Source of the DNA: Paraphysomonas bandaiensis | Taxonomy: Eukaryota > Protista > Chrysophyceae | DNA: 64,000 nucleotides | Assembly: GCA_965644295.1 (NCBI GenBank) | Contig: CBFFRP010000255.1 | Span: 62,001-126,000, forward strand | Direction: 5' to 3' | Part shown: piece by piece, positions 1 to 59,398 of the stretch | Layout of the letters: each line of letters opens with the position of its first letter | Numbering within the stretch: the first letter of the stretch is position 1 | The notes under the pieces: generated by a model | Told to the model about the DNA's origin: nothing | Databases searched by the model: none | Seen by the model: the letters and a program-made list of their open reading frames with translations, nothing else | Position numbers and translations under genes: made by a program

Positions 1-2192
1 CATGTATTGGATGAGTATTGTATACCACCAGTTGAATCCGAGCAATACGCCTCAAGAGTCGTAGATGTGACCGTGGCACCGCCATCTCGCAGTGACTGCA
101 AAACGGGGCCAGAAGAGTCACAGTCATCGCAGTATTTTTCTGGTTTCGACTTCTTTCGGCGCCTTTTCTTTTTAGGCTCCTCACATACTTCTTCTTTATC
201 ACGCAGAGCAATGTTTTCTTTAATACAAAGATTTTCGTTAGCATGATCAATCAATCGACATGAGACAAATGTTCTAATTATATTAATGGCGACCTCCTCC
301 TCGACGGAATGGTTGAGTTGAACGACCCCGACACAGCGAGAATGAAGTTCTCGCATTAGGGCCACAGCATCCATTATTAGATTTGTATTGTCTGGAAGCC
401 TTTTCAGCTCTGCGCCATCCATAAAATCATCTCTGATTCCGTCGTCCTTCAATTCTATCGAGACATCAACTGTGCTGTCTGTGGGCATAGCCACCAAGCC
501 ACAGTCCCCAACAACAACAGCCAAGCTGATAATTTTACAGAGTATTCTAGCTGTAGCGAGGAAAAATCGTCTACTTGCATTCTCGGAACTCTGTGCCGAT
601 AGAAGTTGAATGCCATTAATCCGAATATTGTTCATCACTTGGAGAATGGAATGAAAAGTGCCGTTTACCCAGGTTATTGAAGACGGTAACCCATGACAGT
701 CGCAGTGTAATGCTTGTATTCGCGAGAGCAGATCACCGGATGAAAGTAGTGCTCCGTGTAACACAGAATCGATGTCTCCTGCTGAAAATCCACCAATATA
801 CACCCTGACACACACACGAATCGCTTCTGCTGTCAACGGAATCACTGTGTTGGCACTCAGTGACGTGATGTTGGGGACAGATGTGTTCAAGGCAGACAAC
901 AATAATGGGATACGGGAATGAATTACTCTATCTGCATCAGACCACGATGCACAGCTAGCGATATACTCCTCTCTTCGATTAAGGGAGCATACAGCATCAA
1001 GAGCAGCTCCTCGAATATCGTCATTAGTTTCCTGCGCTATAGCCTTACTTAGTGCCCCAAATACATCGTCCACCAAGGCAGCTGTGCGCAGACTCTCCAC
1101 ACCTCGTCCAAGTAAATGTTTCAAAAGCAGCAGTCCTGAGTGACGCACCGTCCATATGCTCTCATAGGAACACATTTCCAGTGCACTGCGGAGAGCAATC
1201 TCTGTTGCCTCGATATCACCTGTCTCATGGTGGGCGAACGTTGCACACACAACAGCTACAAGCTCTGCAGCAGCCTCTTTCACTGGTGAGTATAACGGGG
1301 TATTCGTAGTGTGTCCAGCATCATCGCTCTCACCTGCTACGTCCATAAAACGGTCCAGCAAAAGGACTGACAGTCCGGTCGCCAGAATATCTTCTGCAAG
1401 AAACGGTGGTATACGAGGGCTATCTTCGGGATTCGGGTTCATCAGCGACAATCCTTCCAGCACACCGACAAGACTATGACAGCGCCCATGACGTGATACC
1501 CAACTGTCAGCCAAAAGACCCGATACCATGAACCGCAGCAAACGCACAAACCAACTCTCGTTTGATTCATTATCCCGCAATTCCAAGTTTCCGCTTCCAT
1601 TATTCTCCGAACTGTACGCAGAGTTCTCTGAATCTTGTGGTGTAATGGTGACATCCTTGCTTCCTAGCAAATCCTTCACGCGCATGTACCGCACAGACAC
1701 CGCTGCATCTCGACTGGCTGTTTCCTTGCCCAACCGTCTCCGTAAGGCCGACCTCTGCTGTTTTACCCATTGGGAACCGTATATAAGGTCCCCATCTGTT
1801 TCACTTTTACCGCTATCGCCATAGAGCTCCACCCCATTAGACACTATATGGCTGATATCGATATCATGTCTAGATAATATGACCCCATCCGACTCACCTA
1901 TGAGAAAACAACAATCAAATCATTACACTGGTACACTCAACACCCTCCCCTTACCAGACTCCAGGAGCGGTATTAAGGTCGACTGATACTTCACACATAA
2001 TTCCCTTAATACCTTGGCCACGCTGAGTCTTGCGTTGACATTATTGTGTGTGGCGTAACTTGTGCAGAGTACATGCACCACTTCTGATATATCTGATTCA
2101 GTAACTATGTCTAATAGAGCATCACACGCTATGCTGCCAGAGAGGGTGCTGCCATCCAAGAGGCGACACACATCTTTCCAAGAATACTTCAT
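1..2192 (-). CDS. BTAF1: TATA-binding protein-associated factor Mot1/BTAF1 (N-terminal HEAT region; gene runs off the left edge)
   Basis: Start MKYSWKDVCRLLDG at 2192; GT-AG intron 1898-1954; then an open minus frame to position 1 (absent from the ORF track, apparently because no stop is reached). Motifs LLLDRFMDV...SPVKEAAAELV and WTVRHSGLLLLKHLL match Mot1/BTAF1 LDRFGD...APVRETCAQ and WEVRHGGLLGLKY. Confidence 0.75.
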
Positions 2193-2588
2193 CAGAGAAA
2201 GAGTGGTATGCTTCCTATATGAAATCCCCAATATAAGTGTCTCTTCAAGGTGATACTTTCACTTCGACTTCATTACTCGATCTTTGAGGACTGTATGTGT
2301 GTACCATTTTGTTTTTCACGTCGTGGGAATGGTATGGAGGCAAGAGCAATGAAATACACTGTGTAGAAATCAAAAAGAGGTATTTTATGCAAAACAATGT
2401 GGTATTTCGAGATATATTTCGAGATTTTCGAGATGAATAGCTGAAAAGTGGCTACTAACTTGCATATATTTATACAGCATACAGACAGACAGCGCATGAT
2501 GCCTTTCAACATAGCATACATATATAGTCGATGAGGGCTTCAGAGTAACATAGTTCGCATCTTCTGATTGTACGGGAGTGTGTTGAGC

Positions 2589-5500
2589 ATGGAGGATAGA
2601 GTAGATATAGAGCAGGTCGTGTGTGAGGGCGGGTCGGATCTGGTTAAGGATATTATTCCAGCTATTCATTTTCTCCGCACCCTTTGCGAGCCAGGAATGA
2701 CTGAAGAGGAAGAAGTGAAGGCAATTATGAGTAATCTTCCTCATATCGAGAGCCTCTATGAGGGATTCGATGATATGAAAGTTGTCAAGGTCATCCGACA
2801 GACACTTGAAGACTATGTATCTGCAGGCGCATCACAGCCGCCTGCACTGAATGTGAGACCGGATGAAGGAATTGCAGTCAGCAGGTAACATATATATGTA
2901 GAAACTCTATCATTTAAAGTATACCAGCGAGGTATATAGAAAAGGAATGGAGCCTATTCGACGAAAGGTAATGAATATTTCGAATCATTAGATTGCGTTC
3001 ACTTTTTTCAGCTTCAAGAGGACGTAGGCACCAACGTGCAGGCCGTTACAGAAGATGACTTGCTTCGAAATCGCCTCGAGGTCTCAAGGAAGAAAAGTAA
3101 ATATATGTTTTCAGTACATATGCCTGTTGATATAACTTTAGGTCGAGGAGGAGGCTTTTCTATTTTCAACTTTGACGACCTTCCTGACTTTGAGCCTTTG
3201 GAAGTAGTACTTCAGTTGTTGCGTGACAAGGACACGGTAGTGCATGGGCTTAACAAACTCTTGGTAGTGGGGATGGATGAGCTCTTCGAACATCCACAGT
3301 GGCCAGACCTCCTTTCCTTGTTGACTGGTCTGCTCACGGAATCCCTATCCGAAGAGTGCACGATTAAGACACTGCAGATCATGTGTAGATTATTTATTTT
3401 ACTCCCGCCAGGAAGTGCGCAATGTTTGGATGCTCTTTTGACCACTCTTCAGCACTTATGGAGCTCTATGAGTGGCGCGCTCGGTGTTGCTCGAGGGTAC
3501 AGCTATCCCGATCGTGCAGCAATGGCAAGAATCCTCTCCCATCGACTACATCGTACTCAGCTAGCAGTTTTTGTACGAGCGATGAGGCGCATCGCCCAGG
3601 TGTCCCTGGAACTCGGTACTGACCGCTGTGCAGGAAAAATGATTGCCTTGTCGTTTCTCATAATAGCACATGGATGCTTTCCAGATGAAGGTAACCAAAA
3701 CGTTCCAGTGTCAGTGCTTTCACTGCTACCGTGCACGGACATCCTTCCCCTGTATGATGACACCAACGAACTTTTTGTGGTCGACGCGTTAATGCTACAC
3801 TGTGCCCCAGTGAGTGTACTCTGCTATGCAATTCATACTGGCTTGGTGGGAGTCCTCACCCAGCAACTGAAAAGCTTAGTAATGCTGCTGTCGAGCCCAG
3901 AAAATGAGAATCTGGATCTCTGTCGTCGAGATTTCGTTTTTATTGCTACATTATGGCTCTCAGTTTTAAGACCTTTTCCCATGCACGCGTGGGTGAAGCA
4001 TATTTGTACCAGCGACGGAAGTGAGGCAGGTTTGAGTGTTGCGAAATGGAAAGCATTCAATGAGGAAATTGGCCAATGCTTTCACGCCCCATGTGTTGTG
4101 GATATGGAGGGGACAAACAAGAAGCTGACCCATTTGGATTGCGGCTATGACCTTGATACTGGTGTGTGGTGCCTTTTGACAAAGAAAGTAAGTGAAGACA
4201 TTACGTTCACAGTGGAAGAATTTGAATCGCTCTTAACTTTAATGGGAGGGGTGTTATGTTCATGTCTCTCCTTCAGCTCGGACTGTACTTTTGAATCTAA
4301 AGTACATCAAATTTCAAGCAGTGCACAACTTCGCGTCCTCAATGATATACTTACTCAAGCATGGCACTGTTCCGATTTAACTCTACAGAATGTTTTGTCT
4401 GTGTACAATCGTTGTGTGTGTAGTTCGAACTTGGATACCTGTCGAACTATCTGTGAAGTATTGACGGGTAGTATTTCTAAGGCCACCGTTGCGCTGAGAA
4501 TGCGATCCCGTGAAGTATATTTACTTCTAATTACTATAGTCCAATCGCTTTTCGTTGCTGTAGTTGGCCCAGTATGTTGTGAGAAAATTGTGCGTGCTGT
4601 TTCAACACTTGTTAAAGTTACTGGTGTACGTGAGGCTGCGGGTTTAAGGAAAGAGGTGTGTTCGATGTGTGGTGCAACGTTCCGATTACTTTTATCTTCG
4701 GACATAACTATTCGTGTTGCATACGTCGCAGCAGCTCTATTAAATGAGGTGTCCATGCCCCATATATTTCATGGTCTGGACGATGATGTACGTGGACTTT
4801 ATGATGAATTGCTTTGCTACATCCTACTCAATACTGAAGTTGTAAGAGAGGTTAAGTATGTGACTCCCATAATAGTTAAGAGATATATGAATGACACTCC
4901 CTGTTGTTTGCTAAAAAAAATATGTGATGCAGTTTCGAATGTACCAGAGTCTGGTTGCACTACCAATGCTCACCAATTACAGCCTGTGCTGATAGATATA
5001 ACTGAACAGTTAGGGGTTGCTGGATTGTTGACTGACACTGCTAGTTTGCTCTTTCAACTAAAAAAAGAAAAGGATTCTAATGTGGCTGATGAATCTTGCG
5101 TCGAAATGCCTCCAGAAGAATATAGTATTTCTAACTTAGCATTGTGTTTGCTGCGTAAATCTGCCAAGGCTGAGAGTCAGGGTACTCCATTCCTCGATTT
5201 GAAGGTAGTGTTACCTATAATGCTGGATCTAAACAGTTGTGTACACTTAAGATGTTTGTTGAAAAAGCACTTCGAAGAGAGGAATATATCCAGCTACAAA
5301 TTTGACCGACTGCTTGGAAAATCCCTCAGTATACGTGATGGTGTGGACGGTGATGTGTTGCTGGAGTTCATTATACGACGCAGGCTTCTTGATATGTTCA
5401 CGGATGGAAACCTTGCATTGCATCATGTATGGATCGCGTTTTATGGCGAGGGATCATATGATAGTGGAAAAGAAGATGCAATGATGACTGAGTTTTGCCG

Positions 5501-6323
5501 CTTGAGATCTATCGATGATTCAGCTGAATCATCAGAACTTCGTGTCGTACAAGACGAGACCTGTGGTACTCAACTATGTGCTATAGCTGAGAATTGTCTC
5601 GTAGACTTTTTTGCTGCCTTTTTTGTATTATATGATGATCTCTCGAGAAATGTAGGGGAAGTATATCGCTTAATCTGCGAGGAAAACCAACAGTCTTGTG
5701 TATCAACAAATATGGATGCCGATGTAGAAATATTTCCTGTGATCACTGAGGCAGCACAACTGTTGGCTGCTGCTGGAAGGAATCTTTCTTCTGTAGGTTT
5801 TGATTTGGTGGCTAAAGAGGTGGCGATTCTGATGTCTAGTTGTAGTAGCTCAAGTTTGGAGCGTATTGATTGGTATTTTGGATCAGTATCTCTTCTCATT
5901 GTGCACTCGAAATCGGGTCGACTCTTCCGGCGGCACAATGTCAATTCGGTACCTCTTGGATTGGAGGATGAAGCGAATACTCTACTACTTAGTTTTAGAA
6001 ATGGGGCAATGGTGAATATGCTAAGACAACATGGTGTATCTTTCTACATTATTGTTAGAAATGTGATAAACAACTGGTTTTTTGGATGGCTCTGTACTGA
6101 AGACGTGCTGCTGACAACATTAGTGTCATTGCTCCGTGGGTATGACTTCGCCGCCATCGTTGTGGCTGCAATAGTATGTGACTGTGTGGATAAATTGCTG
6201 TCGGTAGAATGTTCTTCGAAAGAGGATGCTCTTGAGGCACTTCTGCTTGGAATTAACAGGGCCCCGATGTCACTCCGCTCTCTGCGCGGATATATGATGG
6301 ATATCATGTCTGTGCAACAATAA
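2589..6323 (+). CDS. Broad-minded (BROMI/TBC1D32)-like protein
   Basis: Two short 5' exons spliced in frame into the 1095-aa ORF; a probable 45-nt in-frame intron near 3098-3142. N-terminal ...DELFEHPQWPDLLSLL... and C-terminal DWYFGSVSLLI...NWFFGWL...GYDF...YM resemble BROMI (DWFVSSLFMIM, QCFWNYL, GPDY), by recalled similarity. Confidence 0.55.
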
Positions 6324-6653: not shown

Positions 6654-7096
6654 TGAATGTCAGAACTAATGTAGCAAAACAATTTAACTAAGTGGTGCTT
6701 AACTCTGGTATCCTTCTATTTAACGCTACGGAGGCTGCGTGTGGGTGTGTGCGTCACTGCAAGCACCAAGGTGCAACCACTTTCGCTCTAACACTCAAAC
6801 TAAACGCAGTGAACAAGCGGAATGTTGATATACCTGATATCTATCTGCTGACTTTTCAGGATTTTTGAATCCTTAAGGTGAACAGCCCGGATGCTTGACT
6901 TCAGTAGGAATACCTGTTTACTTGTCAAGTCCCAAAGACGTCTACACAAGTGACACTTAATAATGTCCCTTGTACCACACCAGCATTTGGCTATGAGTGG
7001 ACACAAAATTATCTGCTGACTATATTTGCAGTTCCCGGAGAACTCTCTCTGGTACTTATCCCCAGAACACCACAAAAAGCGGCGAGCCCGACTTTG
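6654..7096 (-). mobile_element. Ribozyme-headed SINE-like element, copy A (long subfamily, degenerate head)
   Basis: Homologous to the other copies; 3' end GACATTCA at 6654; head lacks the first CCCTCAAC. Confidence 0.85.
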
Positions 7097-7190
7097 GCTA
7101 TTTTATTAGATTCTTTCCTGTTCAAGTTAGTTATAAACTGCAATATGCTAAAACTTAGCTCTGACTCTTAAAGGCCTATTGCTAATAATA

Positions 7191-7551
7191 CCCTCAACAA
7201 AGTCGAACTCGCTCCTTTTCGTGGTGTTCTGGGAATAAGTACCGGAGAGAGTTCTCCGGAAAAACTAACATGAGCCACATATATAGCCAGCAGCTGAGAT
7301 ATTGTTCTGCCCACTCATAGCCAAATAATGCTAGTGTGGTACAATTTGTCACTTTTGTAGACGTCTTTGGGCTTTGATGAATAAACAGGCATCCGGGAAT
7401 GGGCCCACCACCTCAAGGGTAACTCTGGGGTTTGGGCATCCTGCTGAAGTTAAGCATCCGGGATGTTCACCTTAAGGACTCAACAACCATGAAGTCAGCA
7501 CATGTCAGGTATATCAAATTTCTGCTTTCTCACTGCGTTTGCTTTGAGTGA
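7191..7551 (+). mobile_element. SINE-like element, copy B (complete-length head, 3'-truncated)
   Basis: Begins CCCTCAACAAAGTCG at 7191; directly preceded by a 3'-end fragment (…cctattgctaataata) of another copy. Confidence 0.85.
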
Positions 7552-7640: not shown

Positions 7641-8132
7641 TATATATGGAAAGTCTTATTATTAGCAATAGGCGTTAAAAAGCTGCATCAACTTAGTAGC
7701 TAGATGAATGCTAGACAAACTAGTAAGACCTCTACCTGTAACTAATCAGTACACACTCTTTTATCCTACTATTTAACGCTACGGAAGCTGCTTGTGCGTC
7801 GCCGCAAGCACCAAGGTGCGACCACTTCCGCTCTGAGTTCTTAAGAGGTGAACATCCCGGATGCTTGACTTCAGCAGGCAGTCCAATACCCGGTTACCCT
7901 TCAGGTAGTAGGCTCATTCCCGGATGCCTGTTTATTCGTCAGGGCCCAAAGACGTCTACATAAGTGACACTTGTTGGTGTCCCTTGTACCACACAAGAGC
8001 ATTAGGCAATGAGTGGGCAGAAAAATATCTGCTGACTATGTTTGCGGCTTACGTTAGTTTCCCAGAGAGAGTCTCTCCGGTACTTATCCCCCAGAACACC
8101 ACGAAAAGGTGCGAGTCCGACTTGGTTGAGGG
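7641..8132 (-). mobile_element. SINE-like element, copy C (full length, 492 bp, 13-bp TSD)
   Basis: Flanked by TGAATTCATGGCA at 7628-7640 and 8133-8145; short (AT)n tail; head CCCTCAAC at 8132. Confidence 0.92.
8044..8132 (-). ncRNA. HDV-like ribozyme candidate at the SINE 5' end (copy C)
   Basis: Nested pseudoknot order P1-P2-P3(ACC/GGU)-L3(UUUUCGU)-P1'-P4 hairpin-J4/2(ACUAA)-P2'. Confidence 0.7.
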
Positions 8133-18642: not shown

Positions 18643-18781
18643 CCCTCAAGAAAGTTGGACTCGCACATTTTCGTGGTATTCTGGGGATAAGTACCGGAGA
18701 TATTTCTCCGGGAAACTAACGTGAGCCGCATATATAGCCAGCAGATATTGTTCTGCCCACTCATAGCCTAATGCTAGTGTG
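18643..18781 (+). mobile_element. SINE-like element, copy D (head-only fragment containing the ribozyme region 18643-18729)
   Basis: CCCTCAAGAAAGTTGGACTCGCAC...CCGGAGATATTTCTCCGGGAAACTAACGTGAGCCGC. Confidence 0.85.
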
Positions 18782-35478: not shown

Positions 35479-35992
35479 ATTGAAAGTCTTATTATTAGCA
35501 ATAGGCGTTAAAAACCTGCACCAACTTAGTAGCTAGATGAATGCTAGACAAACTATTTAGACCTCTACCTGTAAATAATCAGTACACACTTTTTTTATCC
35601 TACTCTATTTAATGCTACGGAAGCTGCTTGTGTGTCGCCGCAAGCACCAAGGTGCGACCACTTCCGTTCTGAGTCCTTAAGGTGAACATCCCGGATGCTT
35701 GACTTCAGCAGCAGGCAGCCCAATACCCCGGTTACCCTTCAGGTGGGCCCTGTCCCGGATGCCCTTTAGGTGGGTCCATTCCCGGGTGCCTGTTCATTCG
35801 TCAGGGCCCAAAGACGTCTACACAAGTGACACTTATTGGTGTCCCTTGTACCACACAAGCATTCGGCTATGAGTGGGCAGAACAATATCTGCTGACTATG
35901 TTTGCGGCTGACGTTAGTTTCCCAGAGAGAATCTCTCCGGTACTTATCCCCCAGAACACCACGAAAAGGTGCGAGTCCGACTTTGTTAAGGG
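35479..35992 (-). mobile_element. SINE-like element, copy H (full length, 514 bp, 14-bp TSD)
   Basis: TGACATAATAATGT at 35465-35478 and 35993-36006; head CCCTTAACAAAGTCGG; ribozyme region 35904-35992. Confidence 0.92.
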
Positions 35993-57774: not shown

Positions 57775-58668
57775 TATTGGGGATTGAAATCTACAAAGTA
57801 TGCCTCGTATACCCTTCATTCTATAAATAACATATGGTTGTTGGCATAGTTGTTCATGTGATTTGTCTTGGCAAACTCATCGTCGTTTTCTTTCCATTTT
57901 CGTGTCAGTTGTTTCAAAGATTGGGTACTCCAATTATATGAAAAAAATTGTAGTTTTTTAGCAAGTTTATTCCGTAGATTCACTGTGACATTTTTCGTTC
58001 AGCCGGTCTACTGTGCTTTAAAATTCGATTCACGTTTCTCTTTTGACGTATAATATATAATCAATAATCAGTTACAATTACTAGCATGTAAACTAAGATT
58101 AAATCCTTTTTATGTCAACAATCTTACTCCTACATTTTAATTCTTCTTATTGCTAAGATTAGCAAAAATAATATTTCCACACAACACACACAATACGACA
58201 TAATATATATATACTATATAGTGTTACTAAGTTGTTACTAAGTGTGAATAGAAGTAAGTGTTACTAAGTATGTTTTCAATAGCTTTTAATTCATTGTTGA
58301 ATTCAATTTTTCCAATTTCAACAGTGAGCTTGAAAATGACTGAATAATTTGTTCATCTATGGTCTATATTTGTTTTTATACGAAATATATATTCTTTCAA
58401 AGTTAAGAATCATTTATATCAAACTGGATTGGATTGAATTCTGATTTCACACCATATATTGCCAGAAAAAATAAATAATAATGATAATTATAATAGTATA
58501 TTAATCACCAATTCATAGATGATAAATATATTGATATATATTGGGCGCTAAGGAAAAAATATAAGATCTTTCGGTAGTAAATAGTCAGTAGAGGTTTCAA
58601 CATGATGATGAAGACCTGGTCCTGTCAATTTATCCTGGTATTGCTTTTATCATAGGCAGAAATTTTCA

Positions 58669-59126
58669 TATTGAAAGTTATTATTAGCAATAGGTGTTAA
58701 AAACCTGCACCAACTTAGTAGATAGATGAATGCTAGACAAACTAGTTAGACCTCTACCTGTAACTAATCAGTACACACTTTTTTCATTCTACTATTTTCC
58801 GCTACGGAAGCTGTTTGTGCGTCGCCGCAAGCACCAAAGTGCGACCACTTCCGCTCTGAGCTCTTAAGATGAACATCCCGCAGGCAGCCCAATACCCGGT
58901 TACCCTTTAGGTGGGCCCTGTCCCGGATGCCCTTGAGGTGGGCCCATTCCAGTCTACACAAGTGACACTTATTGGTGTTCCTTGTACCACACTTATTCAG
59001 CTATGAGTGTGCAGAAGAATATTTGCTGACTATGTTTGCGGCTCACATTAGTTTCCCAAAGAGAATCTCTCCGGTACTTATCCCCCAGAACACCACGACA
59101 AGGTGCGAGTCCGACTTTGTTGAGGG
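58669..59126 (-). mobile_element. SINE-like element, copy L (both ends intact, 12-bp TSD with 1 mismatch)
   Basis: CAGAAATTTTCA at 58657-58668 vs CAGAATTTTTCA at 59127-59138; head CCCTCAACAAAGTCGG; ribozyme region 59038-59126. Confidence 0.9.
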
Positions 59127-59398
59127 CAGAATTTTTCAACACTTATATCTTAGAAATAGTGTCGATCCTTTCGATTAGAGATTAGAACCGACCTGTAGAA
59201 CAGAGTACTAGTTGTCTACCGATCATTATACGGTTGAAAATCAGTGATAGCTCTTTATATAATTTCACAACTTAAAACTAAAAAAGTATGGGCAAAGCAA
59301 TATTAAAATGGTTAACAACTACATTATTACCTCGTTGGATGAAATTTTAAAAGGTAACAATAAGCGATGTCATATATAGAATTTCTATAATAACAGGA

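Follow-up and report, generated by a model that had tools for sequence, protein, structure and literature searches.

Here, we describe a family of short, non-coding retroposons whose 88-nt head is, to judge from sequence and predicted structure, almost certainly a homologue of the L1Tc-type HDV-like ribozymes. We consider it probable that this head is a diverged member of the L1Tc/Pr77 branch that several LINE-dependent, non-coding families of retroposons have in common as their 5' module, and we likewise favor the view that it still cleaves and thereby defines the 5' end of the element. The preliminary description had read the elements as ribozyme-headed retroposons whose 5' end is released by self-cleavage from host read-through transcripts. 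Sequence and structure support placing the head in this ribozyme class, the predicted cleavage site falls on the start of the element, and the element is inserted by TPRT; cleavage activity and release from read-through transcripts are what we infer. Ribozyme-headed retroposons are known from trypanosomatids and animals. A search of full-text literature on HDV-like ribozymes together with stramenopiles or protists returned no description of this retroposon family.

The family was followed from one copy within the window, by which we mean the whole 64,000-nucleotide stretch of DNA analyzed. This copy lies on the minus strand with its first base at window position 59126, so that element position equals 59127 minus window position, and the head sequence as quoted is the minus strand read from 59126 to 59038. 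The copies and their boundaries are as follows.

59039..59126, minus strand: element head, HDV-like (L1Tc-type), element positions 1-88, matched by covariance models R1 and R2
58668..59126, minus strand: whole copy, ~458 bp, ending ...TTTCAATAT, without poly(A)
59127..59137, minus strand: 5' copy of the target site duplication (TSD), GAAAAATTCTG
58657..58667, minus strand: 3' copy of the TSD, GAAAATTTCTG, matching at 10/11 positions
35905..35992, minus strand: head belonging to a second full copy (TSD of 13 bp); R2 model 35.8 bits, start 35992
8045..8132, minus strand: head belonging to a third full copy (TSD of 12 bp, GCCATGAATTCA); R2 model 37.2 bits, start 8132
18643..18728, plus strand: head of a type C element, which has only positions 1-140 in common with type A
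7191..7277, plus strand: decayed head of a type B element, which has positions 1-317 in common with type A

Full copies measure about 458-533 bp, are non-coding and end in ...TTTCAATA(T) without poly(A); compared with the type A element of ~510 bp, the 59126 copy has an internal deletion. TSDs of 8-14 bp abut the first C of CCCTCAAC in three window copies (59126, 35992 and 8132) and at no fewer than 10 other loci, and the flanks upstream of the copies are unrelated to each other. Together these features indicate a retroposon inserted by TPRT from an RNA beginning exactly at C1. That TSD-flanked copies start at the first C of P1 had been proposed from the window alone, and it holds at all three positions; at 59126 the start is ambiguous by 0-2 nt because a CC follows the 3' TSD copy, while at 8132 and elsewhere it is unambiguous.

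The family is abundant. A 25-mer from the head has five window matches at up to three mismatches and none in shuffled sequence, an nhmmer profile search recovers at least nine heads in the window, and the 62.5-Mb genome holds at least 1,767 head candidates. A strict core pattern gives 419 exact matches in the genome, compared to zero when the pattern is reversed as a control. At least three types of element, differing in their 3' parts, share the first 140 nt; this argues for the head being a functional 5' module and does not tell a ribozyme from a promoter. The family consensus given in the preliminary description proved correct, and the 59126 copy departs from it by three private changes, U28G (59099), C68U (59059) and C80U (59047). 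The first of these alters the predicted P1.1 partner, and with the three changes this particular copy may be inactive even if its master was active.

Several arrangements of copies were seen alongside these. At 6700-7190 of the window lies a decayed minus-strand head that ends near 7103 and whose first bases are lost or unrecognizable, and a plus-strand fragment of ~90 nt (7098-7190) resembling the tail of another element directly abuts the head at 7191. Elsewhere in the same genome, two full-length copies (L006 and L012), each with its own TSD, sit inside the head of an older copy; their insertion points are 2 nt apart in the 3' strand of P1 (after ...GTTCT and after ...ATCTGG), which may reflect an endonuclease target preference or chance. 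The window also contains a 1,095-aa open frame without a Pfam match (3036-6323, plus strand).

The head of the 59126 copy reads CCCTCAAC (1-8), AAAGT, CGGACTCGC (14-22), ACC and the L3 loop TTGTCGT (26-32), continues with GGT, GTTCTGGGGG (36-45), ATAAGTA and the P4 hairpin CCGGAGAG-ATT-CTCTTTGG (53-71), and closes with J4/2 GAAACTAAT (72-80) and the 3' strand of P2, GTGAGCCG (81-88). Its predicted parts are listed below.

59119..59126, minus strand: 5' strand of P1, CCCUCAAC, with predicted cleavage directly 5' of the C at 59126 (R2 model position 1; abutting TSD)
59105..59113, minus strand: 5' strand of P2, CGG-A-CUCGC, 8 bp with one bulged A, pairing with 59039-59046 (MFE fold, R1)
59092..59104, minus strand: P3 (ACC/GGU) closing the 7-nt L3 (core pattern match)
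59082..59091, minus strand: 3' strand region of P1, GUUCUGGGGG, 10 nt (7 nt in 22/22 environmental relatives)
59075..59081, minus strand: J1/4, AUAAGUA, in which A46 (59081) is the P1.1 partner of L3 position 3 (59099)
59056..59074, minus strand: P4 hairpin, its stem kept in 8-, 7- and 6-bp subfamily variants
59047..59055, minus strand: J4/2, GAAACUAAU, with candidate catalytic C76 at 59051 in C-U-A-A (invariant in relatives; L1Tc primers)
59039..59046, minus strand: 3' strand of P2, GUGAGCCG (MFE fold, R1)

The fold in HDV order proposed in the preliminary description is borne out by the full-length R1 and R2 alignments, which contain the strand order P1-J1/2-P2-P3-L3-P3'-P1'-J1/4-P4-J4/2-P2'. 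J4/2 was rightly singled out for its ACUAA with a would-be catalytic C: this is C76, followed by U-A-A, at 59051, and the surrounding GAA-N-CUAA is invariant among relatives. L3 is UUGUCGU in the 59126 copy and UUUUCGU in the family, and reads U-N3-C-G-U in both as well as in the environmental relatives. In HDV structures the U...CG of L3 forms a metal-binding reverse wobble. The L3 of L1Tc presumably also reads U-N3-C-G-U, as given in the preliminary description. By contrast, the suggestion that P1.1 would rely on G-U pairs gives way to a simpler one: most probably P1.1 consists of the A46-U28 pair alone, matching the environmental relatives and L1Tc. The family consensus would allow this one pair, and G28 of the 59126 copy breaks it.

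P4 was expected to keep its stem while its loop varied, and the subfamily forms CCGGAGAG/CUCUCUGG, CCGGAGA/UCUCCGG and CCGGAG/CUCUGG are indeed each paired, with the top of the hairpin and the loop varying between subfamilies. P1, P2 and P3 are identical in all subfamily masters seen, and comparison of the genomic copies gave no usable covariation in these helices. As the differences between copies are post-insertion decay from identical masters, a genome-wide R-scape analysis is uninformative for the fold. Minimum free energy folding of the head is no better than that of shuffles (z-score 0.18), as expected for a pseudoknot.

Further evidence for the fold comes from outside this genome. From the unpaired letters common with L1Tc we built a 25-base pattern (ACCT-N3-CGTGGT, gap, GGG-N3-AGTAC, gap, GAA-N-CTAA) whose fixed positions are confined to those unpaired letters, P3 and the GGG of P1'. 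The three best heads of the window fit this pattern. A scan of 596 Gb of bacterial and archaeal DNA gave no match to it, and metagenome contigs gave 22 (L091-L112). Each of the 22 has exactly 7 nt between P3' and J1/4, and in about half of them a fully complementary 7-mer lies a few bases before P2. In an alignment of eight independent environmental sequences, 91.6% of cells pair, compared to 37-49% in slid-partner controls. Fourteen pairs change on both sides, including 8/8 of P2 and three of P1, and P1.1 covaries (column pair 24/39) as U-A in seven sequences and G-C in one; none of 500 shuffles reached these pairing and covariation values. The P1 covariation is partly circular because the P1 5' strands were chosen by complementarity, a choice that does not affect P2 or P1.1. 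Two environmental members also match Rfam RF02682 (HDV-F-prausnitzii) end to end, at 22-23 bits and thus below the threshold of 44. The covariation and these matches indicate that the signature marks a real class of HDV-like ribozymes.

Some of the environmental ribozymes adjoin recognizable genes. On contig L093, an L1Tc-type ribozyme (572-678, minus strand) lies ~550 nt downstream of the pol ORF of a Ty3/gypsy chromovirus (ORFs 1228-4794 and 4848-6257, minus strand; pol comprises protease, RT, RNase H, integrase and chromodomain), possibly inside the 3' LTR. The ribozyme has a long J1/2 insert of 25-30 nt, and the same family is present on L091, L095, L098, L099, L102 and L111. On L107 (706-792, minus strand) and L100 (4730-4816, plus strand), a canonical ribozyme begins 58 nt past the stop of a 1,242-aa ORF whose sole Pfam match is a weak Ulp1 protease domain. 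ORFs downstream of the environmental ribozymes yielded nothing informative.

We determined the relationship of the head to this class with two covariance models, R1 (P2, P3 and P4) and R2 (P1, P3 and P4), both built from the eight environmental sequences and neither containing any sequence from this genome. With R1, heads in the window reach 33-37 bits (E about 1e-7 to 3e-6). Beyond these, the model gives only three matches in the 64 kb, each of them weaker and on a decayed head; in the own-genome loci examined it finds 75 heads. The 59126 copy scores 37.3 bits with R1 (59039-59122) and 33.1 bits with R2 (59039-59126), the latter spanning the full model from 1 to 85. R2 gives 33-39 bits for the heads tested, namely the window copies and those at two other loci of the genome (L004 and L032), which is the same range as for held-out canonical members (L109, 39.7; L102, 34.3; L091, 33.9; L093, 30.9 bits). 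Moreover, R2 model position 1 falls on the TSD-defined first base at 59126, 35992, 8132, L004:1597 and L032:1501, so that two independent definitions of +1 coincide. The search of heads with HDV models that had been suggested at the outset fared differently, as the Rfam HDV models gave no match to the head at E up to 10. This test is weak because even canonical relatives reach only 22-23 bits against the threshold of 44.

The main irregularity of the head is in P1. The canonical continuous P1 of ~7 bp abutting P3' is absent from the window element, and the early description of P1 as imperfect was apt: it can be drawn either as 6 bp with a linker or as 8 bp with a CU bulge. In the R2 alignment, C1-A6 pair with U40-G45 while A7 opposite C39 is unpaired, and two insertions are required, one of 3 nt following P3' and one of 4 nt within J1/2. 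The alternative, first drawn in the preliminary description, joins CCCUC/GGGGG to AAC/GUU and keeps the C-G pair beside P3' that is seen in most relatives. The two are close in stability in context (-18.9 kcal/mol for the CU-bulge P1 vs -19.3 kcal/mol for the 6-bp P1). As an isolated duplex the 6-bp P1 has -8.7 kcal/mol, within the -6.2 to -13.6 kcal/mol spanned by the relatives checked, and 1.15% of random window 8-mers reach this duplex energy. The canonical 7-nt form of P1' occurs in zero copies in the genome; the long, 10-nt form is carried by the matches listed among the 419 genomic cores.

Environmental P1 helices can also be irregular, with a one-base bulge (C) in L093 and L099 and two U-U mismatches in L103 (7755-7844, minus strand), so P1 irregularity is not unique to the window family. 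It is conceivable, and we put it forward tentatively, that the expanded P1 is fully active, either as a bulged 8-bp helix or as 6 bp with a 4-nt linker between P3 and P1, and that the L1Tc-type core is an old and widely exchanged 5' module of eukaryotic retroelements. If so, the HDV fold would tolerate an insertion at the P3-P1 junction that is absent in 22/22 relatives, and the L1Tc-type core would be no trypanosomatid peculiarity, spanning trypanosomatids, a marine protist and environmental eukaryotes, including positions beside LTR elements.

RNA data were available as Logan contigs, from which RNA starts and ends are unreadable. The element turns up in runs with three organism labels as well as in a marine poly(A) metatranscriptome, and nearly all contigs carry the family letter at 59099. 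Two contigs from the metatranscriptome continue past 59126 and carry 354 and 147 nt of other sequence upstream of it. Unless they stem from DNA carry-over, these contigs are uncleaved read-through RNA; they fit co-transcription and lend no support to efficient cleavage.

This result bears on the strongest alternative, in which the head is a vestigial, non-cleaving ribozyme kept as an internal pol II promoter resembling Pr77, with the 5' end of the element set by transcription start at +1. In L1Tc, Pr77 is both promoter and ribozyme (PMC3383444), and among the Pr77 ribozymes of trypanosomatids some are inactive despite being well folded, and activity drops with mismatches (PMC4035085). In addition to these precedents, the non-canonical P1 of every genomic copy and the RNA-library contigs crossing the predicted site speak for this alternative. 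On the other hand, the core letters, P2, P3, P4 and an in-register P1 complementarity are kept in every subfamily master seen; for promoter function by itself, helices involving both strands would be unnecessary. The contigs bridging the site also point to transcripts driven from upstream. We regard loss of cleavage as unlikely, and a Pr77-like promoter role as a live rival or a second function of the head.

Two further explanations are very improbable and were rejected. A classical pol III SINE with a tRNA-, 5S- or 7SL-derived head, on which an HDV-like drawing was accidental, would suit a short, abundant, non-coding element with TSDs, but there is no tRNA-like part, no Rfam family reaches its gathering score in the whole window, the T4 at 26-29 and the T5 in the tail would be expected to terminate pol III, and ribozyme models from unrelated DNA match at E about 1e-7. 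Chance or purely sequence-level resemblance with no common fold could appeal to the unremarkable MFE and the missing Rfam match, but it is scarcely compatible with the absence of the signature from 596 Gb of control DNA, the covariation in environmental relatives and the coincidence of model start and element start.

The evidence supports a non-autonomous TPRT retroposon without a tRNA, 5S or 7SL head, which likely depends on a LINE. The only EN-bearing element seen with a similar 3' tail is a decayed one (L062:3340-3440). Across the aligned portions of the EN-centered loci, which extend to as much as the full 3.7 kb, identity is 98-99.8%. This places the 5' end of the LINE outside these loci, more than 1.5 kb upstream of the EN domain in each of them. 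Comparing R1 matches with EN coordinates revealed no LINE with a ribozyme at a plausible distance among the 150 of ~4,000 candidates that were scored.

The LINEs of this genome have features of their own. Young copies, 98-99.8% identical over up to 3.7 kb, include G000 C644:8171-8899, C440:8739-9452 and C433:110891-111604. The open frames around the APE domain of young APE-type LINEs reach 2,000-3,731 aa, far above ordinary LINEs, and the full-length LINE families are of the APE-RT-RNase H type. At G000:C505:58521-63476 (L071 and L072), an APE endonuclease domain reappears at intervals of 2,178 bp, each time within a 498-aa open frame, a pattern that resembles a tandemly repeated 5' part of a LINE.

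Under the reading we prefer, in which the head cleaves, copies would be transcribed mainly by read-through from neighboring pol II units, with possible additional transcription from an internal Pr77-like promoter. The RNA would fold into a double pseudoknot in which P1, P1.1 and P4 stack beside P2 and P3, and C76 in J4/2, together with the U...CG metal site of L3, would cleave just 5' of C1. The reverse transcriptase of a LINE would then recognize the poly(A)-less 3' tail and copy the processed RNA by TPRT, a step expected to yield the 8-14 bp TSDs abutting C1.

Cleavage by the head would extend the strategy of L1Tc and NARTc to a distant eukaryotic lineage and would provide a natural HDV-like variant with an altered P1, informative on the tolerance of the fold. 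It would also place more than 1,000 potential self-cleavage sites in or near host transcripts, where they could affect mRNA stability. SIDER2 affects mRNA stability in Leishmania. The 25-base signature and the two models make a simple and specific finder for this type of ribozyme in eukaryotic and environmental DNA.

The closest known system is the L1Tc-ingi clade (L1TcRz/Pr77) with NARTc, RIME and SIDER, in which an HDV-like head occupies +1 to ~+77-90 of TSD-flanked non-LTR retroposons (PMC3185411, PMC4035085, PMC3383444). The signature of L1Tc given in the preliminary description is confirmed by printed primers for +1..15, which read CCCTGGCTCAGCCGG (PMC4748587), and for +27..77, which run through TGGT, GCCAGGG, TCT-AGTAC, a short P4, GGAAGCTAAG and the 3' strand of P2 (PMC3185411). 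The window element correspondingly starts with CCCT and runs through GGT, GTTCTGGGGG, ATA-AGTAC, P4, GGAAACTAAC and the 3' strand of P2, such that both have the letters CCCT at the start and then ...T-GGT-P1'-N3-AGTAC-P4-GGAA-R-CTAA-P2'. L1TcRz cleaves at +1; its P3 comprises 3 bp and its P1.1 1-2 bp (PMC3185411). Cleavage 5' of +1 is predicted at the same place here, and a 3-bp P3, a predicted 1-bp P1.1 and a head common to several element families are further points of likeness. The window family differs from L1Tc in its P1 3' strand of 10 rather than 7 nt, a J1/2 of 5 nt, a P2 with a bulged A, an element without a poly(A) tail, and a marine eukaryote as host, which the preliminary description took for a probable stramenopile. 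Comparison with a protein atlas yielded no informative taxonomy for the host.

The environmental ribozymes L091-L112 have an identical core signature, with P1, P2 and P1.1 covarying among them, and L109 has the same L3 (UUUUCGU) and J1/4 (AUAAGUAC) as the window family. In contrast to the latter, the relatives have a 7-nt P1 3' strand that abuts P3, and some adjoin other elements, following either a Ty3/gypsy pol or a Ulp1-domain ORF. Compared by description, the R2 and RTE elements of animals likewise have a 5' ribozyme that frees the RNA of the retrotransposon from a co-transcript, acting at the 5' junction or close to it (PMC3774820, PMC4035085). The R2 element is site-specific in rDNA and autonomous, whereas the window element is dispersed and non-coding.
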